Part shown: positions 4,239 to 42,582 of the stretch, piece by piece
How the letters are laid out: each line of letters starts with the position of its first letter
How positions within the stretch are numbered: position 1 is the first letter of the stretch
From: Eutreptiella sp. 'Long Island Sound 2002'
Taxonomy: Eukaryota; Protista; Euglenida
NCBI GenBank assembly: GCA_964036045.1
Contig: OZ038379.1
Location: 20,336,001-20,400,000, forward strand
Length of the DNA stretch: 64,000 nt
Direction: 5' to 3'
Translations under genes and position numbers: made by a program
The notes under the pieces: generated by a model
Told to the model about the DNA's origin: nothing
Seen by the model: only the letters and a program-made list of their open reading frames with translations
Database searches by the model: none

Positions 4239-7200
4239 CTAGACTTGGCTTCCCGCAGCCCCTTCCGGCTGCGATCCGCCAGGACTTTGTCCTCCACGTT
4301 GCTGGGCTTTGAGTTCCTCCAACGTCCTCAACATGTCCTCAGCAACTTCCTCGATCGACCTCACTCGTCGGTCTTGACCAGGTCTACCACCATAGCCTCT
4401 TCCTCCGCCTTTTCCTTGGCCTTTGCCTTGGCCTTTTCCCTCGTCTCCGCCCTTCGCTTTCCAATCGGAAATCCGCTGCTCCTTGGGCTTCTTCTCGGGG
4501 TGGGCGGCGAAGTAGGCCTTCTTGTCCGCCTCGTACACCTTGCACTGACGGTGGTCGTGTGCATGGTTGTTTCCCTTGCCATAACAGACCCAGCACCCGT
4601 CGTGCTGAGACCTGTACTCTCGGAACGAGAGCGGTGGGTTCCCGATCCTCCTTGGCTCTTTGCCCTTCTTGGGTCCCACCTGGCTCCATCTGGACCGATC
4701 CTGCCCATGGTTCTTCACGTTGTGCGCCACAAACGCGAAGAAATGGGCCTCCTCGTGATCCTCCCGGGACCAGTGGTCTTGGCCACTTCCACTACCATCC
4801 TCCGCGGAGTTGGCCGTGTCCTCGTGGATCTCTCGATGATGGCGGTCTTCTCGGTGGCCTCGTTGTCCATGACCATGTCGATCCTGCACGTGGGCCTCGT
4901 TCTTCGCATTGAGCTTCAACTCCACCGTGATGTACTTCACGATTTCGTCAAGGCTCATGCGGGCGAAGATGACTTGCATCCTCAGCGGCTCCCCGCGCCT
5001 CCACTCCACGTTGTTGAGGCGCAGCAACCTTTGCCCCATGGAGTCCCCGAATACCTCCACGTACACGGCGTTCTTCAGGCCCAACATCCGGTTGGGTTCG
5101 CCCAGGTTCCTCCTGAAGAACTCCATGATACCCGCATGGGTATCCTCCGCCGCCATAATCCTCACCGCCACGCGCTTCTTCGCCCTCTTCTTCTCCTCGT
5201 CCTCCACTCTCCTCTTCCAGTTGCCCGGGAGGACGTCCTTCAGCAAGTGGCGGATCTCACTGGCCTCGTTCCAGTCTTCCACCAACTTGAGGCATCTGCG
5301 GTACTTCCGCAGATACCGGTTCCACTCCCGGACCCGCAACTCACCGCGGTCCAGCGGCAGTGGAATGGACCACAGGTCCTCCAGCTTCTGGTTCGGAGCG
5401 TCCACCCGCTCCTCGTCCTCCAACCACTGAAGGCAGGCCTGCTCCGTCCTGATCAGTCCTTCCCGGATCTGATCCCGCAGCTCCTCCTTCAGGTCCTGCG
5501 CCAGGCGGTGTGGGAATGTCCGGCATACCCACTTGTCCCGCGGCGCTCCCCGCATCTCGCCGACGACCTCCTCGGCGAAGTCCTCCCAGTCCAGGATGAA
5601 GTCATCCAGGTTGGACGGGTTCCCGTCGTAATAGGGGATTTTGATTCCCCTGAGGTCGTCGATCCTGATGGCGTCTCCGACGTCTCCAGCCACCACTCCA
5701 CCAAGACGGATACCACCTGTGGCCGGGGGGTGTGAGTACACTCCCCGTACATCCCTCTCCTCCATGGAGTGCGGTCCAGTTGGGCCTGAACCCATGGGGT
5801 TTGGAATGCGGGAAGGAGTTGCTCCATCGGCTGTCCATATCCCCGTATTGGGGTCCTTCGCCCACAGGTTTCCGCTTGGATGGCCTCGACCATGTCCGTC
5901 GGCGCTTCCCATGGTTCGCCCCTGCATGGTCTGGTTCTGGATCTCCTCCTCCGCATAAACTGCATAGGTAGTTGTAGAGGGCGGTGGATCCTGGGTGGCA
6001 TGGGACATCTGTACCGTCAGGCTCCTCGGGTCCGTGGTTACGTGCCCTTCCCGCATGGACCCAGCCGGTGCCGTGTGTTCCCCGAGCATTGTGGATTCGC
6101 TGAACAGGGGAACAAACGGCAGCGCACCCGGGTCAACACGCGGAGGCGCGTATGGTGCCTCTGCAGGGCCGCCCATGGGTTTCTCCATGGCGCTCCTGAG
6201 GGTCTTAACCCGCTCCACCAGCTCTACCGCGGCCGGCTTTGCCGGGAGCTCCGGACCCGAGGCGAGGGGCTGTCGCTCCTCTAGCCTTCTCAGGCGTCCC
6301 GACATGTCCTCCACTAAATGGAGGAGGCTGTCCACCACTTGCTGCTGCTTCTGCAGGGCCAGCTCCAGACTCTCCCGGTACCGGGCCTGATCCGCTCGCA
6401 GCTCCTCCATGTGGTTCTCCGCGGCCGACTGGTCGTCCAGGATCCCCGCGACGTCCTCCTCTAGAGCGTCCTTGGCGTTGTCCAGGCGGTCAAGGTGATG
6501 CACGATGGCGTCCATCCCCATCTTCGGGTACTTGCCCATGAGGAAGGACACGTGCTCGCAGTGGCACGCAGCGTGCTTTCCGCCGGATTCAGCGCAACCC
6601 GCGGTTCCCGGCACCTCAGACTCCTCGCCCATGGGCGTATCGCCTATGGCGTCCGTCTCTAGTCCCGTGTGCCGGGGCACAGGTGCTGTCCGGGCCCTGG
6701 CTGGCCTCTCCAAGCCCTCGGCGTCGTGCTGCAGGGCGGGCTCGGGGGCCGTATGCGCCCTGGCGATCGGCGCGGGCGTCTCCGACTCCGAAGGTGGCTC
6801 GTAGGCTGTCCGATAGCCCTCGGAGTGCCCCTCGGATTCCCACAGCCTGACCGGGCTGGGGTCCGTGTCCATAGCCCCGGCGTCCCTTGCCGCGGACTTG
6901 GGTGACCCGCGCTTCCGGTAGCGCCGGGCCCGTCCTCCACTGCTGCCTGAATGGCAAGCCTCATCAGAGTCCTCCGCGGCGGAGCGGAGGTTGCATGCCT
7001 TTCGGCAGCGACGCTCACACATGGAGACCAGGTCCTCCATGTTACGTCCTCCTCTTCCCGAATGTCGTACTTCTCTTCGGGCTTCAACTTCCGGAGTTCG
7101 CCATGCTCTTGAACGTCTCGGTTCTTCTATGGCTCCAATCTCCGGCGTGGTCTCCACCGAGTCCACAATACGCACCCAAGGCGTACTTGGGCAGGGCTCA

Positions 7201-7346
7201 TAAGGGCCCAAGTCCCCGGGTCGGCGGTTGGTAGGGGCAGCAGGTAAGCCTCTACTACCATAAAGAAGGTCCCTACCAGGACCGGCCCCCGCTGTGCCCC
7301 TTCCGCCTGTCACCCCTGCTGACTTGCTCCTGATCAACGATTGCAT
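4239..7346 (-). CDS. gag: Gag of a second Gypsy family (true start probably downstream of the PBS, near MEDLVS at about 7040)
   Basis: Capsid-type KIPYYDGNPSNLDDFILDWEDF, coiled coil, non-canonical knuckle CWVC-X8-H-X4-C, GKG-rich tail. In frame with the protease ORF. Confidence 0.85.
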   Translation of the reverse strand: MQSLIRSKSAGVTGGRGTAGAGPGRDLLYGSRGLPAAPTNRRPGDLGPYEPCPSTPWVRIVDSVETTPEIGAIEEPRRSRAWRTPEVEARREVRHSGRGGRNMEDLVSMCERRCRKACNLRSAAEDSDEACHSGSSGGRARRYRKRGSPKSAARDAGAMDTDPSPVRLWESEGHSEGYRTAYEPPSESETPAPIARAHTAPEPALQHDAEGLERPARARTAPVPRHTGLETDAIGDTPMGEESEVPGTAGCAESGGKHAACHCEHVSFLMGKYPKMGMDAIVHHLDRLDNAKDALEEDVAGILDDQSAAENHMEELRADQARYRESLELALQKQQQVVDSLLHLVEDMSGRLRRLEERQPLASGPELPAKPAAVELVERVKTLRSAMEKPMGGPAEAPYAPPRVDPGALPFVPLFSESTMLGEHTAPAGSMREGHVTTDPRSLTVQMSHATQDPPPSTTTYAVYAEEEIQNQTMQGRTMGSADGHGRGHPSGNLWAKDPNTGIWTADGATPSRIPNPMGSGPTGPHSMEERDVRGVYSHPPATGGIRLGGVVAGDVGDAIRIDDLRGIKIPYYDGNPSNLDDFILDWEDFAEEVVGEMRGAPRDKWVCRTFPHRLAQDLKEELRDQIREGLIRTEQACLQWLEDEERVDAPNQKLEDLWSIPLPLDRGELRVREWNRYLRKYRRCLKLVEDWNEASEIRHLLKDVLPGNWKRRVEDEEKKRAKKRVAVRIMAAEDTHAGIMEFFRRNLGEPNRMLGLKNAVYVEVFGDSMGQRLLRLNNVEWRRGEPLRMQVIFARMSLDEIVKYITVELKLNAKNEAHVQDRHGHGQRGHREDRHHREIHEDTANSAEDGSGSGQDHWSREDHEEAHFFAFVAHNVKNHGQDRSRWSQVGPKKGKEPRRIGNPPLSFREYRSQHDGCWVCYGKGNNHAHDHRQCKVYEADKKAYFAAHPEKKPKEQRISDWKAKGGDEGKGQGKGQGKGGGRGYGGRPGQDRRVRSIEEVAEDMLRTLEELKAQQRGGQSPGGSQPEGAAGSQV
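7248..7260 (-). promoter_or_regulatory. Primer-binding site, initiator-tRNA-Met-like (TGGTAGTAGAGGC)
   Basis: Reverse complement of gcctctactacca; resembles the TGGTAGCAGAG iMet PBS and the PBS at 8423. Only about 85 bp of possible LTR lies upstream (7261-7345). Confidence 0.65.
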
Positions 7347-7606: not shown

Positions 7607-8423
7607 AGTAAGAAAAAGTGCTTTTCCATTGCTTTGGGACATACTCTAGTTGTATTAGAGATGCACTGAGCATCCATGCATTTTTATCTTAGTATTGGTC
7701 CAGCCGAAAGTGGTGAGAACACATTTTGACCTATGGAACCAAACACCCAATCAGGATATGGAGTGGACCCCTTAATCCCCTTTCAATCAGAAGTAAAACA
7801 TCTTTTCCTGAGTTGACTGAGCACTGACATACCTAAGGTAGAGCCTATGAATTTATCTATGTTTTTCCATGAATACTTATCTGCCCTAGTGGTATGCACC
7901 ATAGGGGGTTAGGCACCTCTTTTTGAGAGGTCCTGGGTTCAATTCCTGGTCAGCCTAACTAAGTAGGAAGATCCCATCTAAGTAGGAAGATCCCATGTGA
8001 CATGGCAGTGACCTCATCGCCACATACCATGCCACCTCAGCACATATGGGACCCAAAACAAAGAGTGCACATCTCCTAAGATGGCACTATGGAGAGAGAG
8101 TGATCCTGAGGCAGTTTTCTAACTCTTTTCCCAAAACATTTCAGCTATCTCTGTGAATATGCATTCATTTGTTTCCTGAGTTGCAGTTTCTGTGAATATC
8201 TAATCATCTTTCACTGTTTACACTGCAGCCCTTCATGCTTTGATCCTGAATTACCTTCTCTTTGCATACTGTTGGCTTGGGCTATCCTGGATTGAGTTGG
8301 CTTTACTGTATTTCAACCAACAAAAGCTTTTCATCATCCAAAACCAGCAGCAGGACACCCTACAGCAACAACAAGCAGCAGGAGAAGCAAAAACACAGTG
8401 CTGAAAACACTATAAACTTTTCT
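7607..8423 (+). repeat. 5' LTR (817 bp, AG...CT termini)
   Basis: Direct repeat of 18225-19021; directly followed by, and overlapping by one base, the PBS. Confidence 0.95.
7884..7955 (+). other. Decayed tRNA-derived segment (A-box and B-box like) inside the LTR; second copy at about 18502-18573
   Basis: CTAGTGGT (7886-7893) and GGTTCAATTCC (7936-7946), with T-arm-like CTGGG-TTCAATT-CCTGG. Confidence 0.55.
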
Positions 8424-8435
8424 GGTAGCAAGAGG
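8423..8435 (+). promoter_or_regulatory. Primer-binding site TGGTAGCAAGAGG (tRNA-iMet-like)
   Basis: TGG start at the 5' LTR end; similar to the iMet 3' end complement with one extra A. Confidence 0.8.
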
Positions 8436-8521
8436 CAGCCTGTCTCTGTGCACCGGCAGCGACCCCGCGCCGTACAACCAGTGCTCCGAGCAGGCAAACA
8501 TAAGCAGAAGTCCGGATTAAG

Positions 8522-11023
8522 ATGGATCCAGGAAGAGTGGACGCCGAGGTGAACACAGCGCCAGCGCCAGAGACACCGGCAAGGCCGGCGCCTGACGCTG
8601 TACCTTCGGTGGAGCCCTTACATGGGCCAATGGATACGGCGGAGGACTCCTTGGATGGCCTCCAGACGGCCTTTGGGGCCCTGTCGGTGAAGGAAATGGT
8701 CTCTCAGCCTCAGCCTGTGAAGAGGAAGAGAGGAAAAGAGAGCGAGAAGGATGCTGGAGAAGGAGCAGACGAAGGAGAGGAGCAAGGGCAAGACCCGACG
8801 GATGTCCCAACCTTCGAAGGCGCACCAAGCGCTTCTGGCCTCCATGCATCACCCTCTCCCATAACCACCACACTCCCAGCCGCCGCTACATCCACTTCCA
8901 CAACCAACCAGCCTATGGCAGAGGGCACAGGCTTTACTGGCATGCCTCACTACCCCGCCTATGGCATGGGCCCACCTACCACTGCGCTCCTTGAGGCAAC
9001 TACTGCCAGTGAGCCGGTGGCTTCCAGCTCTGCGCCGCGTTGGTATGCGGCTGACCATCCCCATCCACTCCACGCCACGGGAACCTACATGGAAGTTCCT
9101 GGGTATGCTCCTGGGTGTACACCTGGGTATGCACCCCTGAGTGGGTTGAGGAGAGGACCAGAGTCTCTGGGAGGCAGGAGTAGAGGATCGGGAAGATCCT
9201 CCAACAGGTCCCTGACGCGGTCGGAGATCAACGAGGTGCTCCAAGGAGCCACTTCGAAAATCGTGAGCGACCTCACGCAAGAGATCAGGGAGAAGCTGCA
9301 GCCCCTGATGATCCCGTCCCATGCGTCACCTACGACAGTGGGGATGTCACCCCACCGAGTACAGGCTAACCACCTGGCGGCAGGGTTGACGAATACCCTG
9401 GGGAGCCTGAGGAGCCGACCGATGCCGACTCCTGCAGCAGTACCAAGAAGCCCATTCGTCCCGAGGACAGCCCAGCCGCCCTACAGTCACGTGACGAACT
9501 CGACGAGGGCCGAGCTGGACCAGCTGGGGCTGACAGCCCTAAGGGCTATGGTGGACGTGGAGCCTTATGGCTCCAGTGATCTAGGCGGAGACCCCTCCGA
9601 TGATGGGCCGCCTTCGATGACTTCTTCTTCGCCATCGGATGACGAAGACCCTGAGGACCCCGAGGACTCCAAGGGTAAGAAGAAGAAGAAGAAGAAGAAG
9701 AAGACCCGACGCCCTGAAGGACGCCGAGCTCAGGAGGCGAAGGCTATTGCCACCTCCAAGATAGTGGTGAACCTGCCTGAATTCACAGGCAAGGACCTCA
9801 GCGAGTTCGCTGAGAACTTTGGCCGGTTCCTACGACCAACCGGCCAAACCCACGCGAGTGGGCGAGTGAAGTGCGACCTGCTCCTGCAGTGCTGCAAGAC
9901 GAAGTACCTGGAGAAGCAGGTCAGGCAGATCGTCACCAACTCCGCCACCTTTGCCGAAGTGTTGGTTGCCCTGGAGAGGCAGTACCCAACCTACGAGACC
10001 GACCTCTCCATCAGGGCCGAGATCCAGAACCTGCCCGTCCTGCCCAACAACCCCAAACCCGGCAGGGTCTCCGAGCTGTTGGCGGACCTGGACCACTGGG
10101 CTGGACGACTGACGCCCGGTTCCTACAGCAGCGACGACCTGCTGTTTTGGTTGTGCTCCAAGCTCCCCCGTGAGCTATGGGACGAGTGCCGTCTGACGGC
10201 TGAGCGCAAGGCTAGATCCCTCCGCTACGAGGATCTATGCGTGCTGCTCCTGGAGATGGCGCTGGAGAAGGAGAGCGACCAACACCTGAACCACTACCGT
10301 CCTGGTGGTGGAGGTTCTGGAGGCAAAGGGTACCAAGGGTCCCGACCTGGGCAGGGGACTACCCCCAAACACGCCCACGCCCGCCTAATGGAGAACGTGA
10401 AGGAGCTATTCTGGTGTGATGCCAGAGATGAACAGGGCCACCTGCAGCATGCCTCCGACTGCGAGCAGCGAGACTGCTTTGTGGTCCAGGGGAAGCAGCA
10501 GGAAAAGATCACCGGCGCCAAGGTGAAGATGCCGGATCATTACCGCTGCACCATCACGTGTGCATTCTGCGGTAAGCGGAAGCACTATGAGGACGAGTGC
10601 TACCATAAGCAACGCCTATCGGCGAAGCTTAAGGGGGAAGATCCTGGCAAAAGCTCAGGCAAAGGTGGAGGCAAGGCCAAAGGCAACGACTCCGGCAAGG
10701 GCAAGTCGAAAGGACGTGGTCAAGGTGGTCAAGACAAGGGTCAAGGCGGACGAGGAGGAGGCGCTAATCGCCAGAACGACAACAAGAACAAGGACAAGAA
10801 CGGAGGTAACCCCAACCCTAATCCAGGGGGGAACTCCGAGCCCTCTGGAGGGCAGTCTGGACCTACCACACGCTCACAGACGCAGGCCCAGCAAGAACAA
10901 GGAGCCAAGCGTGAGCATGAAGGTGGTGACGACGGCAACGCCAAGAAGAGAAGCCGTTTCATGAGGATGGCCCGCAAATTGCGGAACAAGGGGTTCGAGG
11001 TGACCTGTCCCGCGGAGTTCTGA
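8522..11023 (+). CDS. gag: Gag polyprotein
   Basis: LPEFTGKDLSEF capsid motif, CX2CX4HX4C knuckle (CAFCGKRKHYEDEC), poly-Lys tract, G/K-rich tail. Confidence 0.92.
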   Translation: MDPGRVDAEVNTAPAPETPARPAPDAVPSVEPLHGPMDTAEDSLDGLQTAFGALSVKEMVSQPQPVKRKRGKESEKDAGEGADEGEEQGQDPTDVPTFEGAPSASGLHASPSPITTTLPAAATSTSTTNQPMAEGTGFTGMPHYPAYGMGPPTTALLEATTASEPVASSSAPRWYAADHPHPLHATGTYMEVPGYAPGCTPGYAPLSGLRRGPESLGGRSRGSGRSSNRSLTRSEINEVLQGATSKIVSDLTQEIREKLQPLMIPSHASPTTVGMSPHRVQANHLAAGLTNTLGSLRSRPMPTPAAVPRSPFVPRTAQPPYSHVTNSTRAELDQLGLTALRAMVDVEPYGSSDLGGDPSDDGPPSMTSSSPSDDEDPEDPEDSKGKKKKKKKKKTRRPEGRRAQEAKAIATSKIVVNLPEFTGKDLSEFAENFGRFLRPTGQTHASGRVKCDLLLQCCKTKYLEKQVRQIVTNSATFAEVLVALERQYPTYETDLSIRAEIQNLPVLPNNPKPGRVSELLADLDHWAGRLTPGSYSSDDLLFWLCSKLPRELWDECRLTAERKARSLRYEDLCVLLLEMALEKESDQHLNHYRPGGGGSGGKGYQGSRPGQGTTPKHAHARLMENVKELFWCDARDEQGHLQHASDCEQRDCFVVQGKQQEKITGAKVKMPDHYRCTITCAFCGKRKHYEDECYHKQRLSAKLKGEDPGKSSGKGGGKAKGNDSGKGKSKGRGQGGQDKGQGGRGGGANRQNDNKNKDKNGGNPNPNPGGNSEPSGGQSGPTTRSQTQAQQEQGAKREHEGGDDGNAKKRSRFMRMARKLRNKGFEVTCPAEF

Positions 11024-27600: not shown

Positions 27601-28040
27601 GTATGGACTCAATCTCCATCTCGCTCTCGATCAACCTCAACGCGACAAATGTATGGGATGATGCCCTGTGACACACCGGTCGGGAAATCATGTTGCTCAC
27701 CCATTTGTAAACATTTGTGTTTGCCAATTGCTTGCCATACATCGTGGAAAGAACACCCTTTCAAACCACAAAACAACAAGTTCCATATTTTTACGTCTAT
27801 GTGTACATTCCTTTTCTTTTAGTATGCTGTACTCCTATAACCTGGAACTTGAGCCCGAGTCCGGTTGAAACAGCTTGAGTGCCTAAATTCCAGGTTATAT
27901 AATTAAAACCGGTCGGGTGTGAGTTCCCGGGTCTATGACCCGGACTTAGAAACCGAGTGTATAACCCGGAACTCGGACCGAGTTTCGGGTTGCATATCCC
28001 GGACTCGGTCCGAGTTCCGGCACCCGGTCTATATATAATG

Positions 28041-28226: not shown

Positions 28227-28443
28227 TAGAAGGGTTGCGAGCCAATTTTGTCATCACCACCCCCTTGGCAAGCAGAGCCCTCCCCCAAACCTCTTGCATC
28301 ATGCACACATTCAGTGGTCTAATTGGACAACGAGCAAGAGGATGTCAAGGGAGAACAAATGAAGGCCGATGGCGTGAAAATGGAGGAGGAAATGGGTGAA
28401 CATAAGGTGGAGCAAGCAATTGGCGTTGGATAGGGAAATCCCG
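28227..28443 (+). repeat. 217-bp direct repeat, left copy (flanks the Penelope-like element)
   Basis: Matches 34704-34920 with 2 mismatches. Confidence 0.95.
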
Positions 28444-28580
28444 GACGATGCAGCAGTCCCAGCACCTACGGATGCCTCGCTTCTCTCTACCCCTCAGGAG
28501 ACCGGCCCCCAGTCCCCAGAATCTCAGGACATGGCCGAGGATGACGATGACATCATCTAGAAGGTTGAAGGCCTCACAAA

Positions 28581-31052
28581 ATGTCAGGTCACAAAATGTC
28601 TGCTGTCACAGATATACTCGCAGATTCTTTTCATGACCTACCTGCACATATTCGTGATGCGGTGGTTGCGGGGATGACGCGTATAGTGCAGCAAGACCTG
28701 GTTTTGGAAAAAATGACACACGTTGTTCAAGAGCTAGAAACATCCATTTCGACTATTTCTGCTGAGTTGCACAGAGATACCGATGACTTGGACCAGGAGC
28801 ACACGTCCAAATCTTTTTTGTCTCCCCCCTCCCCTCCTACTATGCACTTCGATAGTTTAGGTACAGATTCAGAGGTCTTTGGCGCAACCAGATCAACGCC
28901 TGATGCCCCCACCCGCGGAGACACAGTCTTCGCTGGGTATACTAGTGAAGATGATCCAGCTGAAATCCCACCCCTGGTTTATAGTACAGATTCTGACTAT
29001 GACTCAGAACCAGATGAGCCTGAAGAGACACCCCTACCGCGAGAAGCTACTGTGCTCACGGGCAGAGAGGATTTTGAAACTTTTGTTGAAAAGGTTACCC
29101 AAAGTCGCACCCTCACTGTCCTATGGAACAGGTTCGCTGCCCAGAATGGATGGTCATCATGGGATGATTTGGATAAAGGGAAACTGTCAACCACCCTAGA
29201 AAGTTTCCGGAAGGTGCGGGATGCGTATCTCCCTGATTGTGCTTCACCTCACGAACACGATAATTTCAGATTCACTAGTGGGTGGGAGGAATTTTTCACT
29301 GAAGTATGCCATGTTACCCTCTCCCTGTGGAGCAACCCGTGGGCCTCCCCCACTGCTGAGTATTGGCACCCAAACGACACAGGGGGTTTGGGAATTGAGT
29401 CTCAGACGCCACTGCTTCAGGTCCTGAATAGACTAGAGGCAAGGTCTGCGTGCTTCGTTAATACAGCGATGTGTCCTGACCCGTCTGACGATATCTTTCG
29501 AGTTTTCAACCGAAAACTGAGAAGTTTTGAACCGTTCCGGCTTGTGTGTGTTACCAAACGTGATGCATCATCCAGATGGAACTCATTTCTCGAGACCTGG
29601 GAACAAAAAGGTAGAGCTGTACTTTGTGGTGCAGTGCGCTTCATGAATGTTCGAACATACGGGTGGAAAAAGGAAACATGGTCAAGAATGAATGGCCCGT
29701 GGGAAGTATATATTCTAGAAAGTGGTATAAAACAAGTGGGACATGACTTGTCATCTGAAAAGTACTCCAGCTCCCTACGAGGACTGATCGGAGGGAAAAG
29801 TAGCTCAGAATGGTTTCCTTTGCCCTCTTTCTCTGAGAATCACTTGCCAAAAGGTTGTGCAGGCTTCAGGCATGCAGAGGTACAAACGTTCTGGGACAGA
29901 TGGGATGAGATTGCCCTGAAGAGAGAGGCATTGTTGCGCGCAAAACCTGTGAACTGGTCAGCAGTGCGGGACTCACTCCAGGAGACCAATCTTTTACTAA
30001 CTGATGCCAAGGACTCACGCCTACGCCGGATAGCCCGCCTAGCGAAGCTCCCACTCACCTGGAGGCTTGATGAGGTGGGTTCCTGGGTGTATACGGTGTG
30101 CGGCCCGTACCCCCCCTACGTAGGGCAAACCGGATGCTTCCAAAATCAGAGATCCTGCTTAGATAGATATAGGGAACACCTACAAAAAGCCAAGGCGTCG
30201 GCCAACCATTTCTCAGGTATCCGCCACAGAAAAATCAGAGCAGCCATGGGATTCGGAAAACTCCCCTCCCTTGCTCGCATGCTTGCTCGCGAGGGTCCAG
30301 CAAGAGTTACCATTGTGGCGCTACAAGACGTGGCTGATAAACAGGCTGGTGCCATTGAACGTTGGTGGAACACAGTCCTAGGCCAGACGCTGAATCAAGT
30401 TACCCCCTTTGGTGGTATCGACGCATTCAAAGTCGAACGGCTATTAGGAGCTCACTCAAAGACCATTTCCATGGAAACTGCCTCACTTACAACAATGGCA
30501 CAATCATTGTTACGCAACAACTCCTGTAAATCCAATCGTGAGATGGATGAACGGTGGTGGTTTGTTGCCACGTTCCTACGTGTCCTGTATGGTATCCCTT
30601 TGAAATGGGAACTGCACCCCGCTGACGGTGTCAACTGGGGTGAAGCCTGGCTTAGCACCAGCTCAGGCAAATTTTCTATCCTCCGAAAGGGGGTCTGTCG
30701 ATCGCTGGATCAGCTGTCTGCGCCCCCGCCAGGTGTGGAGTGGGAGAGGTGGATACACCCATCGTCACCTAATGCCCGCGCAGTTTGGGGCTCATTTCTG
30801 CCAGCCGCCATGGCCAAGTGTGTCTGGTTTGCGTGGGATGCAGGGGACGTAAGACAGAATTTTCGCTCCCTTGTGTGGGGGCTGACACGTGGGGCGGTAC
30901 CAGGAGGTTGGTGGAAAGCCCCCATGCGCAGGTTTTTTGAGTACTGGTCCCTGGAGCGCTTCTTCCCGCTGCATGCAGTTTTTAATTGGCAGAAGGAAGC
31001 CAGAGCCAGGGCAGCAGCAGATTTCAGGAAGGCGCAGCAGGAGGAGGTCTGA
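28581..31052 (+). CDS. Chimeric ORF: PLE N-terminus and GIY-YIG fused in frame to the RT C-terminus of the inserted second PLE
   Basis: WVYTV...YVGQT...RYREH...IERWW...TLN at 30084-30400. After 30562 the frame reads VLYGIPLKW...WGEA...SLVWGL...WW, paralogous to VLYNIPLKW...WGEA...SLLWGL...WW in the downstream ORF. Confidence 0.85.
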   Translation: MSGHKMSAVTDILADSFHDLPAHIRDAVVAGMTRIVQQDLVLEKMTHVVQELETSISTISAELHRDTDDLDQEHTSKSFLSPPSPPTMHFDSLGTDSEVFGATRSTPDAPTRGDTVFAGYTSEDDPAEIPPLVYSTDSDYDSEPDEPEETPLPREATVLTGREDFETFVEKVTQSRTLTVLWNRFAAQNGWSSWDDLDKGKLSTTLESFRKVRDAYLPDCASPHEHDNFRFTSGWEEFFTEVCHVTLSLWSNPWASPTAEYWHPNDTGGLGIESQTPLLQVLNRLEARSACFVNTAMCPDPSDDIFRVFNRKLRSFEPFRLVCVTKRDASSRWNSFLETWEQKGRAVLCGAVRFMNVRTYGWKKETWSRMNGPWEVYILESGIKQVGHDLSSEKYSSSLRGLIGGKSSSEWFPLPSFSENHLPKGCAGFRHAEVQTFWDRWDEIALKREALLRAKPVNWSAVRDSLQETNLLLTDAKDSRLRRIARLAKLPLTWRLDEVGSWVYTVCGPYPPYVGQTGCFQNQRSCLDRYREHLQKAKASANHFSGIRHRKIRAAMGFGKLPSLARMLAREGPARVTIVALQDVADKQAGAIERWWNTVLGQTLNQVTPFGGIDAFKVERLLGAHSKTISMETASLTTMAQSLLRNNSCKSNREMDERWWFVATFLRVLYGIPLKWELHPADGVNWGEAWLSTSSGKFSILRKGVCRSLDQLSAPPPGVEWERWIHPSSPNARAVWGSFLPAAMAKCVWFAWDAGDVRQNFRSLVWGLTRGAVPGGWWKAPMRRFFEYWSLERFFPLHAVFNWQKEARARAAADFRKAQQEEV

Positions 31053-31393
31053 GAGAAGTGTGCACAAGGGTGGGAGAGGGCGGGGACATTTTTTTCAGAC
31101 CCACAGGTTTGGTACGGATACAGTCTCTTACGGTGTTGGATGGTGGTGCTCGACTTAGACAATGTAGACAGGATGGTGCAGACATACCCGTGGTGGTGCC
31201 CGTTGTGTACCCATAGAACGCTGATTGCTGCTTGTGTTGTAGTTTGAGAGTGAATAGCGTAAGAAGAACGAAAGGCGATGGGCAGGGAACGGGAGGACAG
31301 GGTGAAGCGCTTGATGCCTGCACATGTCAAACTGTTTCCCAGCCTATGACCGGTTACTGAGGAGTCTTCTTGCCTCGCGCTTTCTGCTTGCTC
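30563..31393 (+). mobile_element. 5'-truncated Penelope-like insertion (RT C-terminus, 3' UTR, hammerhead) flanked by a perfect 75-bp duplication
   Basis: 30488-30562 is identical to 31394-31468. Confidence 0.88.
31261..31371 (+). ncRNA. Hammerhead ribozyme, type II topology
   Basis: aagaagaac-GAAA-GGC...GCC-TA-tgaccggtta-CTGAGGA-gtcttctt; stem II pairs with one bulge; predicted cleavage after 31346. Confidence 0.75.
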
Positions 31394-31400
31394 TACAACA

Positions 31401-34238
31401 ATGGCACAATCATTGTTACGCAACAACTCCTGTAAATCCAATCGTGAGATGGATGAACGGTGGTGGTTCCTAGCATGTGTTGCAGGCAAGATCGAACCCA
31501 ATCTGTTTGAACGGCTTTTTAAACACATTGCGAGGTTAACCAAGAGTAAATGGAATCTTATGGTGAAACGAAGACTGGTACTGCGAATTCCTTGCTTTGA
31601 CCCCATGATACAAACACAGGTGAGAGGGATCTGTATTGATGCTATGACCAAGCTCATGATCCCGAGGGGCCTCAGAGATTGGTTTGCTAAATCCATTTGT
31701 GTGATCCCGGTCCCTTTTATGACAATACGCGATGCCTTGAGTGGAGGAGGGCAGCAGAATGCGCCTAAAATCACAACACACATCCTGGAGGAATTGCGAT
31801 GTTCTGATTCAAATTTATGTACCTGGGTCTCTCTCCCACGGGAACTAGGAGCCTGGAAACTGGAAACTACACCTGCAGCACTCCAACAGGTATGTGCAGA
31901 GGCTCTGAGCCGTATTAAAAAGCGATCATGTATGTGCTCCCACATGCGCAAGGGCTCACCAAATTTTGGCGGCTTTCTTGACCACGTGGTCATTCGATCT
32001 CCGTCCGATTGGTCCCATATCCTGGAGCCCCAACCTGTACGTATTTTTACTGCAAATGCTAGAAATCAATTCTTCCCGGACCCAGGTTCACTCAGACAGC
32101 AGTTGACAAACATGACTACTGCCCTGCAGGAGCTGGCAGTTTCACAGGTTTCTGTCGAACGGTGTCAGTTTGTGGCGAAAGGTATTTTCGAGGGAGGGAT
32201 TGTAAAACAGACAGAGTCCACACTATGGGAAGCAATGCGAACCACAGTGGCCCAAGGCGTCCAGTTAGCCCCATGGCTCAATGGTTCACAGATCTATGGT
32301 TTGCGGTATGATGTCTCAGAGTTACAACTGAGGGTGACTGTTTGGGACAAAAAACTGACAAAATTAGGTGGTCTGTGCTCCCAGCTGTATGATACTCGTC
32401 TGTTAGAGTCTACTATTTTTGGCTCACGCTTTCAGTTGTGGGGGTGGGCTGATTCACCTGCCATTGCAAGGCTCGCAATTACACACATGGTCATCAAGCG
32501 TGCACGGGAATGTGGAATCATTAATGACATGCTGCAACGTCGTCTTGGCAGAGCCTGTTTTGCTTTACAGGAAGATACAGACGACTTTCTGTTTGAATGT
32601 TTTATGGACCCCCAGCCCCATAAACGCTACCCCAGTGCCCCAGCGATGTTTTCACTCCCTAAGTGGAAATCTACGGAGTATGATCCTGATAACCCGGTCC
32701 TGAAATGGAGGGATATTGTATCTTACAAATCACATGCCCTCCAGAGTTATAGTAGAGTCATTTCCCGTGCCCTACAACTGCTGTGTGCCTTCTTGCATAG
32801 CTCAGGACTTTGCCTGGGCTTTCCAAACATGTTGGGTGTGCGTGATCAAATTAAGGCAATTCAGCGATTTGCTGACGGTGCGACCTCGGTTAATTTTAGA
32901 GAGCGCGACATGGACGACATGTTTTGGCAAATTGAACGGTCAGAGGCTCTGCAAGCTATCAGTTGGGCCATAGACAGAGCACGCTCAGACGCTCGTGGGA
33001 AGACACTGTGGTTTAGTATAGCCAAAGGCCTGGAGAAAGACCTAGATAGATTTGGAAAAAATTCTGCGAAATCTTTTGTAACACTCTCGGAATCAGAAGT
33101 GCTGCGGTTTGTGGAGTACGACATGACTGAAAACGTTCTCCTCACTGTTGGTTCCCTTATATTATGTCAGGGTGCGAGAGGAATCCCCATTGGGGGATTT
33201 CTCTCAGCACAAATTGCCGAGATATGGGCCTGCTGGAAAGAGTTCACCAGCCTTTTTGGTGAAAATGTCCAGTCTGCCCAACGACAGCTTACCGACCTCT
33301 GTGCTGATTTTTCAAAGACACAGGGTATCCCTGTGCAGATTACACTTCCAGGGACAGTTGAGCTTATTCACCACTCCCCTGATGAAACAGTGCTAGCCCA
33401 TGACATGTTTGTCTCCAGGACAGTGCACCTGGTTACTCCAGAGACATTGTGCCAGTCAGGTTTCTCAGGGTGGTGGTCCCCTGCAGACAGAACCTTTGCC
33501 ACCGCCGAAGTTGCAGGCCACCATGTACGCTTCATACATACCCTCCCCTGGGATGGAGCGGAGGGGGGACGACTGCAGAGTATTGTGCGGCATTCAACAC
33601 GGAAAAATAAGCGCGTGGTGATGCAGTTTTTTCGAAATTTTGATGCGCTGAATGGGGTGGTGGGGGAGATCTTGTCTGCAGAGACTGAGGGTGTTGATAC
33701 AGGCCCCTCATCTCAGTCCAGACCAGTGGTCATCATGTCACGATATAGGGATAATATCTACTTTGCTATGGCGGGCATCTCCCCCTTTCTCGAGGCCCCC
33801 ACTTTATTTTTGATTGAGCAATTGACTGCGGTGTTGTACAATATCCCACTGAAGTGGGAACCCCATGGGAGTGTTACTACGTGGGGAGAAGCATCTATGC
33901 TTCTTGAGCAGCATATGGGATTTTTCAAGCACAGTTTTGGTCTGCAGAGAAAAGGAGTTGTTCAAAAACTCAGTGACTGGGTCACAGGGACAGTGACAGC
34001 AGAGTGGGAAAATTGGGTCGACGCCCACTCGCCCAATGCACGGATGGTGTTGCGCTCCCTTCTGCCCTCTTTGCTGTATAAGTCTCTCCTGTATGCCTTG
34101 AACAAACGAGATGTCGTATCCAACATGCGATCACTTCTGTGGGGCCTTGGTGTGAAAAGATATCCAGACCAGTGGTGGAGTGGTGGAGACCTGCCCTGCA
34201 TCGCTTCTTTCACAGATTCCGGCTTCACAGGGTGGTAG
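31401..34238 (+). CDS. Penelope-type reverse transcriptase (C-terminal part of the original EN-RT ORF)
   Basis: KWRDIVSY, DMDDMF (motif A), GIPIGGFLSAQIA (motif B'), RYRDNI (motif C), PLKWE thumb region. Confidence 0.9.
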   Translation: MAQSLLRNNSCKSNREMDERWWFLACVAGKIEPNLFERLFKHIARLTKSKWNLMVKRRLVLRIPCFDPMIQTQVRGICIDAMTKLMIPRGLRDWFAKSICVIPVPFMTIRDALSGGGQQNAPKITTHILEELRCSDSNLCTWVSLPRELGAWKLETTPAALQQVCAEALSRIKKRSCMCSHMRKGSPNFGGFLDHVVIRSPSDWSHILEPQPVRIFTANARNQFFPDPGSLRQQLTNMTTALQELAVSQVSVERCQFVAKGIFEGGIVKQTESTLWEAMRTTVAQGVQLAPWLNGSQIYGLRYDVSELQLRVTVWDKKLTKLGGLCSQLYDTRLLESTIFGSRFQLWGWADSPAIARLAITHMVIKRARECGIINDMLQRRLGRACFALQEDTDDFLFECFMDPQPHKRYPSAPAMFSLPKWKSTEYDPDNPVLKWRDIVSYKSHALQSYSRVISRALQLLCAFLHSSGLCLGFPNMLGVRDQIKAIQRFADGATSVNFRERDMDDMFWQIERSEALQAISWAIDRARSDARGKTLWFSIAKGLEKDLDRFGKNSAKSFVTLSESEVLRFVEYDMTENVLLTVGSLILCQGARGIPIGGFLSAQIAEIWACWKEFTSLFGENVQSAQRQLTDLCADFSKTQGIPVQITLPGTVELIHHSPDETVLAHDMFVSRTVHLVTPETLCQSGFSGWWSPADRTFATAEVAGHHVRFIHTLPWDGAEGGRLQSIVRHSTRKNKRVVMQFFRNFDALNGVVGEILSAETEGVDTGPSSQSRPVVIMSRYRDNIYFAMAGISPFLEAPTLFLIEQLTAVLYNIPLKWEPHGSVTTWGEASMLLEQHMGFFKHSFGLQRKGVVQKLSDWVTGTVTAEWENWVDAHSPNARMVLRSLLPSLLYKSLLYALNKRDVVSNMRSLLWGLGVKRYPDQWWSGGDLPCIASFTDSGFTGW

Positions 34239-34568
34239 GTTTTAAAACCATGATGTGCTGGTACCAAGAAGGGCGACAGGTTCTCAGTGTGTGACCTCGT
34301 TCTCTGTGCCAGACACTTTGTTGGTTGAAGTGCCAGTGGCGAGTTCGCTGCGGCGTTTCCCACGGTGTCTGTGCATGGAGACGTCGTGACCAACTAGCCC
34401 TATGCACATGGCATGAATGGCATGGTTGAGGACGTTGGTACCAAGGAGGACGACAGCTTCTCGGCGTATGACAGTTTTCTTTGCTGGATCTAACCCTATT
34501 GACATGACATGCATGACACGGTTGAGGACAAGTGAGATTGTTCGTTTCACATAATCTGGTGTTAGGGT

Positions 34569-34660
34569 GCAAGATACGAAAGACGGTGGACTAAGATGAG
34601 TAGAAGAACGTTGTTTCCCATACTTGATCTTCAGTCTATTGCAACTGATGAGTGTTTTGC
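34569..34660 (+). ncRNA. Hammerhead ribozyme, type II topology
   Basis: gcaagatac-GAAA-GAC...GTC-TA-ttgcaa-CTGATGA-gtgttttgc; 9-bp stem II, extended stem III; predicted cleavage after 34638. Confidence 0.85.
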
Positions 34661-34703
34661 TGCTTTGCTGCTCGCTGTAAAGCCCCCTTCTACTTGAACA
34701 ACC

Positions 34704-34920
34704 TAGAAGGGTTGCGAGCCAATTTTGTCATCACCACCCCCTTGGCAAGCAGAGCCCTCCCCCAAACCTCTTGCATCATGCACACATTCAGTGGTCTAAT
34801 TGGACAACGAGCAAGAGGATGTCAAGGGAGAACAAATGAAGACCGATGGCGTGAAAATGGAGGAGGAAATGGGTGAACATATGGTGGAGCAAGCAATTGG
34901 CGTTGGATAGGGAAATCCCG
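34704..34920 (+). repeat. 217-bp direct repeat, right copy
   Basis: Matches 28227-28443. Confidence 0.95.
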
Positions 34921-36105: not shown

Positions 36106-36982
36106 TGTAGACCAAGTCTGCTGCAGCATTCTTTGGCGATAGCCTAAATTCTTTGCCACTTGTCGAGTTCCGGGATATACAACCCGGACTCGATCGGAGT
36201 TCCGGGTTATACACCCGGTTTTAATGTAGTATTGTGCAATACCATGAGCAATATTGTTATTGGCTGAGGAGTTGGTGCCTGCGTGCTTGCTGAGCTAGTT
36301 GTTGCTCATTTTGACAATGGCCAACAGCTCTTGCCTTCTTACTAGTGCCACGTGCACGTCACACTTGCACCATGCGGAAGGCCACTAACGTTGTGGGGTA
36401 TGGGGTTGCTTTCCAAACCAAGCCTTAGACTTGGCCCAAATTCCTAACTCTACATGCGAGGACTGCAAGTTAATGCAGGTTATGAAACGTGTTCAAGGGG
36501 GCATGACATGGAGGGAGCATGTGGTAAATGGTTGCTTGTTCTATACCCACCCGAATCTTGTCCCAAGCTTGTGTAGTTTCGTGTGCGTTTCTTGTACATT
36601 TAGTACCAAACTCACACAATCCGTTTAAGCTTCTCGTTTCCCATGTAAGAGCTACTTGTACATATTTGTGTCGTCTTCCTGGACAAATTGACACAGTGTG
36701 CGCAAACCTACCACCGAACCATCAAACCATGTGTCATTGCGGTTCGCGATGCGAAGGTATTCGAATTCGTACCAAAAAGTGGCACCAAAACTATGACAGT
36801 ATGGCCGGGCAAACACACAACTATGTACAAGTAGCTTGCACATAGTGTACGAGTAGCTTTACAAGCTATGTGGGTTTGCGTGCAAATGTGCACCACTTTC
36901 CAGCACAAAAATACGGGTGGGCGCATTATTTTACCTGTGTGAAACACCACCTATTCCATCACAAGCCAATTATTGCGAGAGA

Positions 36983-38965
36983 ATGGAACGTGTGCATGAA
37001 GCACCCAACGAGGGGGATGAAATCGACGAGTTGACCTTGGATGGGACTGCCCGCCACATACGCTCAGTTTGTGGTGAAATTCGTCGTTGCCCCGGCCAGA
37101 TCATGGTCGCCATCATGGTCGTGCCCATTATTTTGTGCATTGTGGTGCGGTCTGCGGATGTTAAATCCCCTGGCACCGCAAGGTTGCATGCGATCGGTGT
37201 CGATAGCTCCATGGGTACACTCCAAGCGATTGCCCAAATTGGGAGCCATGTAACCAAGCACGCCACGACTATCACAGGTCCAACCAGGGGCATATCCGTG
37301 CGGACTACACGCAAGCACCCCATTCCTTTTCCGGCGATGCACCCGCCCGGAGTGTCCTCGCTCGCGCGAACCACTTGGCCTCAAAAGTCCATCACATGGC
37401 TCGCCCTTGGCCCGTTGTGCTTGTTTGGAGCAACGATTGCAGTGTGGCTCCGACGTGGTTTTGCCGCACCCTCGAAGGCGTGGGACCCTGGCTCCAAACT
37501 TTGCGATCCATCACGGGTCGCTCAAAGCACGGACCGCCGATTCGCAATGTGCGGTGTCGTCGGTATGCATGTCCCTCCGGACCGCCACCGGTTGCATGCA
37601 CCCACAATGTATCAGGAGGTGCTCGCGTTATTGCATGAGGCAGTGGCCAGCGGTGTTTGGCCAACCACCTCTAGTGCACGCGCGCGCCTCATTGACGGTT
37701 GCGGGCTTCACGGGGTTGCCCGTGGGGCATCTTTCACCGTCGTCAACCCGTTGCTGACCGAGCCCGCAAGACCGAAAGGGCGTGGTGGTTCGAAGGCAAG
37801 GGGCCGCAAAAAGAGAGGTGCCCTTGGCAACAAATTGTTCCCAGCCCTCGCGGAAGCTGTATTTCGGTTGGAGGCTGAGATCGCCCCTCGTGGGCGACCG
37901 GGAAGTGCTCAATGTGTTGTCAATTACAACACGCGGTTTGTGCCCCACGTGGACATGGGGTCGGGTGCTGGTGGCGATGCCACGTGCCTTATTGTTGCCC
38001 TCGGAGACTACGTTGGGGGTGGCGTCGTTGTGGAAGGACAGGTGCACGACGTGCGATATTCGCCGCTGGAGTTTGACGGGTGGAGACAGACCCACTGGAC
38101 CGAGCCGTTTATCGGCGATCGGTTCAGTCTCGTGTGGTACACTCCGACTACGGAGACACACGCAGTGGCTGCGGCGCGAATCTCCCGCGACTACGACCCG
38201 CCCATCCGGTACCGACCAGGGTCCACGGATGAAAACGTCGTTGTCGAGGTGCTGGGCCCGCGCCACGTGTATGCAGGGCCTGCCCGCGGTGACCCTCGGT
38301 GGCCTCCAACCGACTTCTCTCCGCGTGGTCACGTTGTGCTAGATGTTGGGGCACACATAGGGGCTTTCACGCGGTATGCGTTGGAGGCTGGTGCGTCGCG
38401 TGTGCTTGCTTTCGAGCCAGAACCCGAGAACGCGGCCCTACTTTGCGACAACGCTACTCCATTCGTCGGCCATGTTCAGCTATTCGAGGCAGCAGTCGTG
38501 CATGGCGGAGGGGACGTGCGCGATTTAGTACTGGGGCGCGACCGCAGCGATGGTGTCAAGAACACCTGGCGGCATGCGCTCGCGGGTCTCACGCACTACC
38601 AGGATTCTGCACGGGGTGAAGGCGCCGACGTGCTGCAGCGCGTGCGTGTCGCGACGGTGCCGTTATTTGGCCCTGGAGGGGTACTCACTGATGACGTAAC
38701 CTTCGTGAAGCTGGACTGCGAAGGGGCTGAGCTGGAGCTGCTCTTAACTTTCCCGCCCGGAGGCTGGCGCAATGTGCAGCGGCTTGTGTTTGAGTGGTCG
38801 TTCACAAAGAATCGCAGCATGGACGACTTCCGGGCGGTCGTGGCGCGGCTCGAATCTGAAGGATTTCAGGTGATGCACGAGGGCGTGGGGCATTGGGACC
38901 AGCTCCCGGAATGGCCATGGAATATGGACGCAGTGGTTTTTGCTGCCCGAGATCTGGGCTGCTGA
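36983..38965 (+). CDS. 2OG-Fe(II) dioxygenase fused to an FkbM-family SAM methyltransferase, with a two-TM N-terminal presequence
   Basis: HxD (PHVD 37945-53), distal H (38093), RxS (DRFSL 38120); FkbM motifs RPGSTDENV, LDVGAHIG, AFEPEPEN, KLDCEGAE. Uninterrupted frame; first ATG at 36983. Confidence 0.88.
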   Translation: MERVHEAPNEGDEIDELTLDGTARHIRSVCGEIRRCPGQIMVAIMVVPIILCIVVRSADVKSPGTARLHAIGVDSSMGTLQAIAQIGSHVTKHATTITGPTRGISVRTTRKHPIPFPAMHPPGVSSLARTTWPQKSITWLALGPLCLFGATIAVWLRRGFAAPSKAWDPGSKLCDPSRVAQSTDRRFAMCGVVGMHVPPDRHRLHAPTMYQEVLALLHEAVASGVWPTTSSARARLIDGCGLHGVARGASFTVVNPLLTEPARPKGRGGSKARGRKKRGALGNKLFPALAEAVFRLEAEIAPRGRPGSAQCVVNYNTRFVPHVDMGSGAGGDATCLIVALGDYVGGGVVVEGQVHDVRYSPLEFDGWRQTHWTEPFIGDRFSLVWYTPTTETHAVAAARISRDYDPPIRYRPGSTDENVVVEVLGPRHVYAGPARGDPRWPPTDFSPRGHVVLDVGAHIGAFTRYALEAGASRVLAFEPEPENAALLCDNATPFVGHVQLFEAAVVHGGGDVRDLVLGRDRSDGVKNTWRHALAGLTHYQDSARGEGADVLQRVRVATVPLFGPGGVLTDDVTFVKLDCEGAELELLLTFPPGGWRNVQRLVFEWSFTKNRSMDDFRAVVARLESEGFQVMHEGVGHWDQLPEWPWNMDAVVFAARDLGC

Positions 38966-41895: not shown

Positions 41896-42582
41896 GGCGC
41901 GACAAACAAAGACAACAACAAAACAAACAACAAACCAACAACCGACCAAGACACAACGCCGAGCACCGCCACAAAAAAAAAAGCAAAGACAAGAAACCGC
42001 ACAACACACACAAAGAGGAACAAAGGTGCCATGAAGCACAACGCCATGAAGATGGAGGGTGGTGCAAGAGGTGCGTGTCAGGGCACAAGGGAGGTAGGAA
42101 GAGTGCGAGCACCGCAACATGCCGTTAGGCCGTCAAGCCATTTGGTCATGAGGCCACGTGGGGATGCTCGCGTGACCTCATGCAACAGCAGTTCTGCAAA
42201 ATTGACCCGTTGGCCAAAATTTTTCTGTCGCATGCCATGCACACAATGCTCCAAATGGTGTACAATGGTCGAGCGTCAATCAGAACGAGGGACAAACTGT
42301 TGGAGCGGAATGGGTCAACAGTGCTGGCACCTCCATTGTCCAGAGCTATCAACGATTGAGTTGGCGTTGTATTCGGAGCCTCCACAAGGAAGTGAGGTAG
42401 ACCTGGGTCTTGGTCAGTGATGTGCATGGTTGGGGTGTACGGCGACGACACTACATTTGCTAAGGCTTGTGCCAGAGAGCGGGGTCATGCTGGGGCTAGG
42501 ATTGGTTGGACTGATGGAATGGTCGCTGGAGCTGGGGCCGATTTTAGGGAGTCCTTCCATGTCGCCTGGGTAGTCGTTGGGG

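Follow-up and report, generated by a model that had tools for sequence, protein, structure and literature searches.

The hammerhead ribozymes described from Penelope-like elements (PLEs) are of type I, possess a short palindromic helix III and work as dimers (Cervera & de la Pena 2014, PMC4209133). PLEs with an N-terminal endonuclease have been reported to lack canonical hammerheads, and some of them carry core halves located far apart 'on either side' (PMC8557442). Type II hammerheads are common in bacteria and archaea; those associated with eukaryotic repeats are almost all of type I (PMC3088659). Here we describe a motif from the euglenid Eutreptiella sp. 'Long Island Sound 2002', found at 34569-34660 in a 64,000-nt stretch of contig OZ038379.1 (positions 20,336,001 to 20,400,000; hereafter the window, whose own numbering is used below). 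It lies on the sense strand in the 3' untranslated region (UTR) of a retroelement that probably belongs to the N-terminal-endonuclease PLEs. As judged from sequence comparison, the motif is real, selected and hammerhead-derived, it has a new topology, and it is not a product of chance. A sister copy of the same design is present at 31.3 kb, and the two are referred to as the 34-kb and the 31-kb copy.

With the minimal type I hammerheads of PLEs the motif shares a location in the terminal repeats or 3' region of the element, the reduction of one helix to a palindrome with an apparent need for two copies, a wide sequence variation with compensatory changes, the retained G10.1-C11.1 pair and the U3-A8 variant. 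In those ribozymes, however, helix I is open, helix II is a hairpin and helix III is palindromic, whereas here stem II is open (its strands are ~75-255 nt apart), stem III is a hairpin with an insert of 48-224 nt, and the palindrome is in helix I. Of the features that characterize the dimeric min-hammerheads of PLEs, the sense-strand 3' terminal location was found and the type I order with a palindromic helix III was not. The hosts differ as well, the present elements being of the N-terminal-endonuclease type from which canonical hammerheads are reported to be absent (PMC8557442).

The element order and the open stem II are held in common with the type II hammerheads of bacteria, archaea, and phages (Perreault et al. 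2011, PMC3088659; Rfam Hammerhead_II). These are monomeric, however; their stem I is closed as a hairpin, the loop of which in most cases forms a pseudoknot with the 3' tail. Here stem I has no loop, so a loop I pseudoknot of the bacterial type cannot exist. The double hammerheads of avocado sunblotch viroid and newt satellite 2 (Forster et al. 1988, cited in PMC4209133) resemble the arrangement proposed below in their two composite active sites, in the use of two copies on a multimeric transcript and in a regulation by copy number, but their shared helix is III instead of I and stem II is not exchanged between the copies. Retrozymes and non-LTR (long terminal repeat) retrozymes, which are thought to derive from PLE terminal repeats (PMC4918200, PMC7229834, bioRxiv 10.64898/2026.07.22.740005), consist of tandem units that each carry a hammerhead, like the 810-nt units of one of the loci discussed below (L002). 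Their hammerheads are of type I or type III, however, and their RNAs circular. Full-text literature searches turned up neither a hammerhead that combines type II order and a palindromic helix I nor any report of hammerheads from euglenid retroelements. The literature searched describes type I hammerheads in PLEs (PMC4209133), type II hammerheads in bacteria and archaea (PMC3088659) and N-terminal-endonuclease PLEs without canonical ones (PMC8557442). Therefore, a preliminary description of the locus was fair in calling the architecture 'new-looking', and its picture of PLE hammerheads as mostly dimeric type I motifs with a palindromic stem III matches the published account (PMC4209133).

Structure and conservation of the motif

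Read 5' to 3' on the (+) strand, the 34-kb copy parses directly as GCAAGAUAC-GAAA-GAC-(49 nt)-GUC-UA-UUGCAA-CUGAUGA-GUGUUUUGC. The outermost elements are the two strands of stem II, at 34569-34577 (5' strand, positions 11.9-11.1) and 34652-34660 (3' strand, positions 10.1-10.9), which pair with each other over 9 bp, seven of them Watson-Crick and two G-U. Between them lie, in this order, the GAAA tract at 34578-34581, which consists of G12, A13, and A14 (34578-34580) and A15.1 (34581) and is invariant across the families compared; the two strands of stem III, GAC (34582-34584) and GUC (34634-34636), which enclose the variable 49-nt insert; U16.1 (34637) and the A at H17 (34638); the hexamer UUGCAA (34639-34644); and the CUGAUGA box (C3-A9, 34645-34651), in which G5, A6, and A9 are invariant and positions 3 and 8 covary between families. 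All conserved hammerhead core positions (C3-A9, G12-A14, A15.1-U16.1, and H17) are occupied, each of them canonically, and cleavage is predicted between 34638 and 34639. The order of the elements, with stem II open and stem III closed, is that of type II. Only 6 nt, the palindrome UUGCAA, separate the cut site from C3. This loop-less self-complementary tract replaces helix I, and the tracts of the other families are likewise self-complementary. With 6-10 nt between H17 and C3 and no loop, helix I is not formed within a single copy in any of the families parsed. Downstream of the motif, the 3' tail of the element (34661-34703, + strand) ends in ..CUUGAACAACCU; this end is common to the loci L003 and L002, and the sequences diverge beyond it. 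A type I or III hammerhead concealed downstream of CUGAUGA was considered and rejected, as no GAAA occurs there in the proper register. The perfect core, the 9-bp stem II and the type II order noted in the preliminary description could all be read directly in the sequence. Its palindromic stem I was also borne out, as a loop-less palindrome in place of that stem, and five further families agree with this.

The 31-kb copy occupies 31259-31373 (+ strand) in a nested, 5'-truncated element. It reads GUAAGAAGAAC / GAAA / GGC..65 nt..GCC / UA / UGACCGGUUA / CUGAGGA / GUCUUCUUGC, has a stem II of 10 bp plus one bulged A, and would be cut at 31346/47. When both strands (128 kb) of the window were scanned with a descriptor, only two sites emerged, namely the 34-kb copy and, with one bulge allowed, the 31-kb copy; block-wise dinucleotide shuffles gave an expectation of 0.013 (strict) and 0.067 (relaxed) hits per window. 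A fixed consensus pattern recovered exactly these two copies in the window, with 0.00 expected. The stem III difference between them (GAC/GUC versus GGC/GCC) is compensatory, as had been proposed, a point that the five further families extend, and the UA cleavage site is indeed common to both. The claim that their flanks are unrelated did not hold: these are the 3' UTRs of related retroelement families whose reverse transcriptase (RT) C-termini are 38.6% identical. At the DNA level, only the hammerhead blocks of the two flanks align.

Twelve loci (L001-L012) were retrieved from public assemblies via protein homologues. The same design was found downstream of the open reading frame (ORF), and on the ORF strand, in L003, L002 (four tandem copies, the motif being present in every tandem unit), L008, L011, and L001, which together with the two window copies represent seven families. 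In addition, an identical copy of the motif was detected in L012, a near-twin of L001 from a second sample. In the order stem II, stem III, cleavage step, spacer, core box, and stem III insert, the five further families read as follows: GCAGAACAU / GUGUUUUGC, GAC/GUC, UU, UGAUCA, CUGAUGA, and 56 nt in L003; ACAUAGCAC / GUGUUUUGU, GAU/GUC, UA, UGAUCA, CCGAUGA, and 49 nt in L002; GGUGCACAC / GUGUUUGCC, GGU/GCC, UA, UGGUCCA, GUGAGCA, and 92 nt in L008; AGACAAAC / GUUUGUCU, GGC/GCC, UA, UGGCCGGCCA, CUGAAGA, and 224 nt in L011; and GAUCAAGAC / GACUUGAUC, AGC/GCU, UA, AUGGCCGU, UUGAUAA, and 48 nt in L001. The core is canonical throughout in the 34-kb copy, L003, the 31-kb copy, and L011, the exceptions being G3/C8 in L008, U3/A8 in L001, and C4 in L002. 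At the H17 step, L003 has UU and the other six families have UA.

What these families show directly is the motif itself, where it lies, how it is conserved, and how it covaries. An alignment of nine sequences was fitted to the structure, a procedure that favours pairing, though the stems are short and unambiguous; in it, 92% of the stem cells are paired as compared to 78% in shuffles and 34-54% with the partner slid, and 8/14 pairs have changed on both sides. In helix II, 88% of the cells are paired and five pairs have changed in both strands, among them the outer pair (G-C to A-U); helix III is 100% paired in all nine sequences, and both partners have changed in 2/4 of its pairs. A single family departs from G10.1-C11.1, having G-U there, and GAA (3/3 columns), A15.1-U16.1, G5, A6, and A9 are identical in all families. 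The stem III insert (48-224 nt), by contrast, is identical in only 2/92 columns across families. The core pair C3-G8 is CG in seven of the nine sequences, GC in one (L008), and UA in one (L001). Watson-Crick pairing between these two bases occurs only when a hammerhead takes up its active fold, and the conservation together with the covariation of positions 3 and 8 is the pattern that catalysis predicts. U3-A8 is a documented natural variant in PLE hammerheads (PMC4209133), and the C3G/G8C double change partly rescues hammerhead activity (PMC11167929).

The spacers between cut site and core, 6-10 nt in length, are self-complementary in 7/7 families. Six distinct spacers occur, only L003 and L002 sharing one (UGAUCA), and the joint chance of six self-complementary spacers is ~1.6e-10 if they are independent. 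Neither this self-complementarity nor G10.1-C11.1 nor the covariation of positions 3 and 8 was required by the first descriptor. Moreover, a covariance model built from five families only (the 34-kb copy, L003, L002, the 31-kb copy, and L008) detected L001, which was not in its training set, with an E value of 0.004 over 98.7 kb and 2e-5 locally, an out-of-sample confirmation. An extended descriptor applied to 138.6 kb gave seven hits, all on the PLE sense strand and all with fully self-complementary spacers; in shuffles it gave 0.37 hits, and 0.017 with a perfect spacer. Weak covariance-model matches at 42273-42368 of the window and 2635-2731 of L001 were rejected for their scores of 8-10 bits and broken cores. 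A protein-guided search of Joint Genome Institute (JGI) metagenome contigs detected no relatives, and a consensus DNA pattern that recovers both window copies had no match in either the JGI metagenome contigs or 185,579 prokaryotic genomes.

A proposed dimer mechanism and alternative readings

For the dimer geometry, the cleavage and the biological role of the permuted PLE motif we infer a domain-swapped double-hammerhead mechanism, which we consider moderately probable. Helix I cannot close in one copy because it would have to form from 6-10 self-complementary nt without a loop, and the canonical three-way junction could arise only between two copies. The pairing partners would be either two separate RNAs or two tandem copies of one transcript; in L002 each tandem unit has the motif, so one transcript can carry two copies. 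The two palindromes would form one shared helix I, in which nt 1.1 of copy A would face the nt preceding C3 of copy B, and the junction would close only if strand 10.x of B paired with strand 11.x of A, that is, with stem II formed in trans. The two copies would make up a domain-swapped double hammerhead, free of pseudoknots, in which both ends of the shared helix I bear an active site. In each RNA, cleavage would follow A34638, at a distance of 65 nt from the element end, and in head-to-tail or partial tandem arrays double cutting would release a unit-length RNA whose ends carry the stem II strands. In cofolding without constraints, the 31-kb copy and L003 were predicted to form the palindrome helix between two molecules and to swap stem II. 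The calculated energies of the double hammerhead versus two monomers were -85.3 versus -86.2 kcal/mol for the 31-kb copy, -91.5 versus -86.4 kcal/mol for L008, and -45.5 versus -47.0 kcal/mol for L001; in these three the dimer thus comes to within ~1.5 kcal/mol of the monomers or surpasses them in stability.

Several results weigh against a catalytic double hammerhead, or against the motif as a general feature of these elements. In the 34-kb family, the modelled double hammerhead reaches -39.7 kcal/mol versus -56.2 kcal/mol for two inactive monomers and is clearly the less stable state. In the minimum-energy fold of the monomer, the cut-site strand pairs with a second GGAC-like segment within the stem III insert; the resulting alternative hairpin, which buries the cut site, is long and partly conserved, and it might represent either an 'off' state or a signal in its own right. 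A 247-nt metatranscriptome contig (run X1) that corresponds to 34461-34703 crosses 34638/39 uncut and ends exactly at the element end, and there is no pile-up of contig ends at 34638/39, although assembled (Logan) contigs are a weak gauge of cleavage. All four copies in L002 contain CCGAUGA, i.e., the U4C change, and a U-U mismatch in stem II. As this lineage made tandem insertions despite U4C, full core integrity is not needed for transposition. Published PLE hammerheads, too, cleave poorly in vitro and are dispensable for in vitro insertion (PMC4209133, PMC11167929). No Rfam hammerhead model matched the window region or five of the loci, whether the gathering score or a limit of E<=10 was applied. 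Furthermore, no motif is present in the ~2 kb downstream of the ORF in L007 and L009, and a decayed relative of the 31-kb type in L010 (~2520-2560) has lost the CUGANGA box and kept the palindromic spacer. This 10-nt spacer, CACCCGGUUG, is still nearly self-complementary and shows a compensatory change of its outer pair from U-A to C-G. In L004, L005, and L006, the downstream sequence (<400 nt) is too short to judge the presence of the motif. With no motif in L007 and L009 and the core lost in L010, the motif is therefore patchy across the clade, in agreement with the description of canonical hammerheads in Chlamys by Craig et al.

Part of this evidence would also fit a hammerhead-derived but essentially non-catalytic 3' UTR element that acts as a recognition or dimerisation signal for the RT of the element, an explanation we regard as unlikely. 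Stem II, the site-burying hairpin, and the palindrome would then constitute the signal, the palindrome being comparable to a retroviral dimer-initiation site, and the core bases would persist via ancestry or protein contacts. Such a function would accommodate the alternative hairpin, which most families are predicted to adopt as their minimum-energy fold and in which some changes are compensatory, as well as the continued transposition of the U4C copies, the L010 palindrome without its core, the uncut contig across the site, and the finding that hammerhead mutants had no effect on the in vitro insertion of another PLE (PMC11167929). The covariation of the tertiary pair 3-8 and the invariance of G5, A6, A9, G12-A14, and A15.1-U16.1, however, are unexpected for a binding site.

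Alternatively, each copy might be a monomeric minimal type II hammerhead that forms stems II and III in cis and cleaves slowly without a partner, with helix I absent or reduced to a hairpin of 1-3 bp (e.g., UGG-CCGG-CCA). The 10-nt spacers could indeed provide 3 bp and a tetraloop, and the pairing predicted for monomers is the cis stem II. This is nonetheless quite improbable: the 6-nt spacers UUGCAA and UGAUCA are unable to form a hairpin, the self-complementarity runs through the central bases, where a hairpin loop has no need of it, and the monomer constrained to the hammerhead fold lies 2.5-17 kcal/mol above the minimum-energy fold. Finally, it is hardly credible that the resemblance is accidental, or that the palindrome acts at the DNA level (e.g., as a signal for an endonuclease or for integration) and adjoins unrelated sequence. 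At 0.013-0.067 hits per window, a loose descriptor will match here and there in a whole genome; this motif, however, occupies the same position in seven families of differing sequence, covaries, and was detected in one family by a model trained without it.

The host retroelement and its surroundings

The retroelement that hosts the 34-kb copy extends from 28444 to 34703 (+ strand); in comparison with the 6.9-kb tandem unit of L002, it is truncated at the 5' end. Its ORFs (28581-31052 and 31401-34238) are one coding region, split by 831 nt from the 3' part of a related element (30563-31393), which is flanked by a perfect 75-nt duplication. A direct duplication of 217 nt (28227-28443 and 34704-34920) encloses the host itself. 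The two direct duplications (217 nt, 99% identical; 75 nt at 30488-30562 / 31394-31468, 100% identical) would be unusually long if they are target duplications. The element ends at ~34703, as contigs of runs X1 and X2 that stem from other insertion sites end or diverge at 34703-34705. Since related copies share this terminus and then diverge, the predicted cut of the 34-kb copy lies 65 nt from the end; the position near the 3' end had been stated in the preliminary description, and five further families agree. For the 31-kb copy the predicted cut is located 47 nt before the end of the nested element, and in the families of the 34-kb type the cut site is 55-76 nt upstream of the shared terminus.

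The N-terminal part of the host protein contains a conserved, GIY-YIG-like block (xIY-x9-Y[VI]GQTG..R..EH..N) upstream of RT-like motifs, and the translated C-terminal part contains RT-like blocks and a CxC motif (CMC). In a language-model protein atlas, the neighbours of the N-terminal part are GIY-YIG clusters, and those of the C-terminal part carry HTH_animal, DUF8422, RVT_1, and GIY-YIG (the PLE architecture), with scores of 0.89-0.91. The host ORFs had no match in Pfam at E<=5, and the PDB profile searches returned only unrelated proteins, none of them significant (E >= 0.14). AlphaFold models were of low confidence, with predicted local distance difference test (pLDDT) values of 47 for the GIY-YIG part and 33 for the RT part, and too poor for a fold search. 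L002, a relative from the same assembly, is a head-to-tail tandem with a period of 6885 nt plus 810-nt partial units, as in PLEs, and insertion traits of the PLE type are thus seen in the partial tandems of L002, the 5'-truncated window copy, and the nested 831-nt 3' fragment. The sequence motifs and insertion traits suggest that the host is probably an N-terminal-endonuclease PLE with GIY-YIG N-terminal to the RT; this assignment draws on motifs and language-model leads and not on a Pfam or PDB profile hit.

In L002, the 810-nt partial units follow the head-to-tail tandem at 8028-10040 and form an array that resembles a retrozyme; each contains a fragment of the ORF encoding the RT C-terminus and a hammerhead-like motif with the U4C core. 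In L001, 1.6 kb of short tandem repeats (5850-7250; units of 41 nt and roughly 100 nt) lie between the RT stop codon and the hammerhead, and the contig ends are repeats of each other (1-102 = 8916-9017), the element having been assembled as a tandem or circle. Genes of the piggyBac-like DDE_Tnp_1_7 type adjoin the PLE copies in L009 (535-1419) and L011 (2257-3618). In the window, a 34-nt inverted repeat (27950-27983 / 36188-36221, 91% complementary) brackets the whole insertion, which is consistent with an element inside a DNA transposon, and the ORF at 36917-38965 encodes an FkbM-type methyltransferase domain (Pfam PF05050, E 7e-14). The 3' UTR of the host has an internal duplication of ~96 nt within 34259-34529 (34394-34433 resembles 34490-34529, and 34259-95 resembles 34436-72), and one contig from an RNA library has a joint that goes back by 96 nt, so copies differ in repeat number. 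A 95-nt piece of the same 3' UTR (34293-34387) shows an extreme word depth in run X5 (~36,800 versus ~800 nearby) and recurs with ~90% identity inside contigs of 5-5.6 kb from three estuary metatranscriptomes; it probably derives from some other repeat or transcript of very high abundance.

Meaning for Penelope-like elements

Hammerheads are a hallmark of PLEs, yet the large N-terminal-endonuclease clade has been reported without canonical ones. Among its members, the animal Naiads have been noted to contain only 'HHR_core' and 'half_core' fragments, with the halves far apart on either side (PMC8557442). A far-reaching extension of our proposal would be that the permuted, helix-I-palindromic double hammerhead is the 'missing' ribozyme of this whole clade including the Naiads and processes tandem transcripts into unit-length RNAs. 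We deem this rather unlikely; if it is true, the ends of the unit-length RNAs would be held by stem II, which would allow religation or circularisation as in retrozymes. The motif at 34569-34660 and its relatives offer an example of type II order in a eukaryotic retroelement and indicate that current descriptors and Rfam models miss one natural hammerhead topology. The domain-swapped double hammerhead, with its shared helix I and swapped stem II, would represent a second route to copy-number-dependent hammerhead cleavage, and a concrete motif and model are now at hand with which Naiad and Chlamys elements may be searched.
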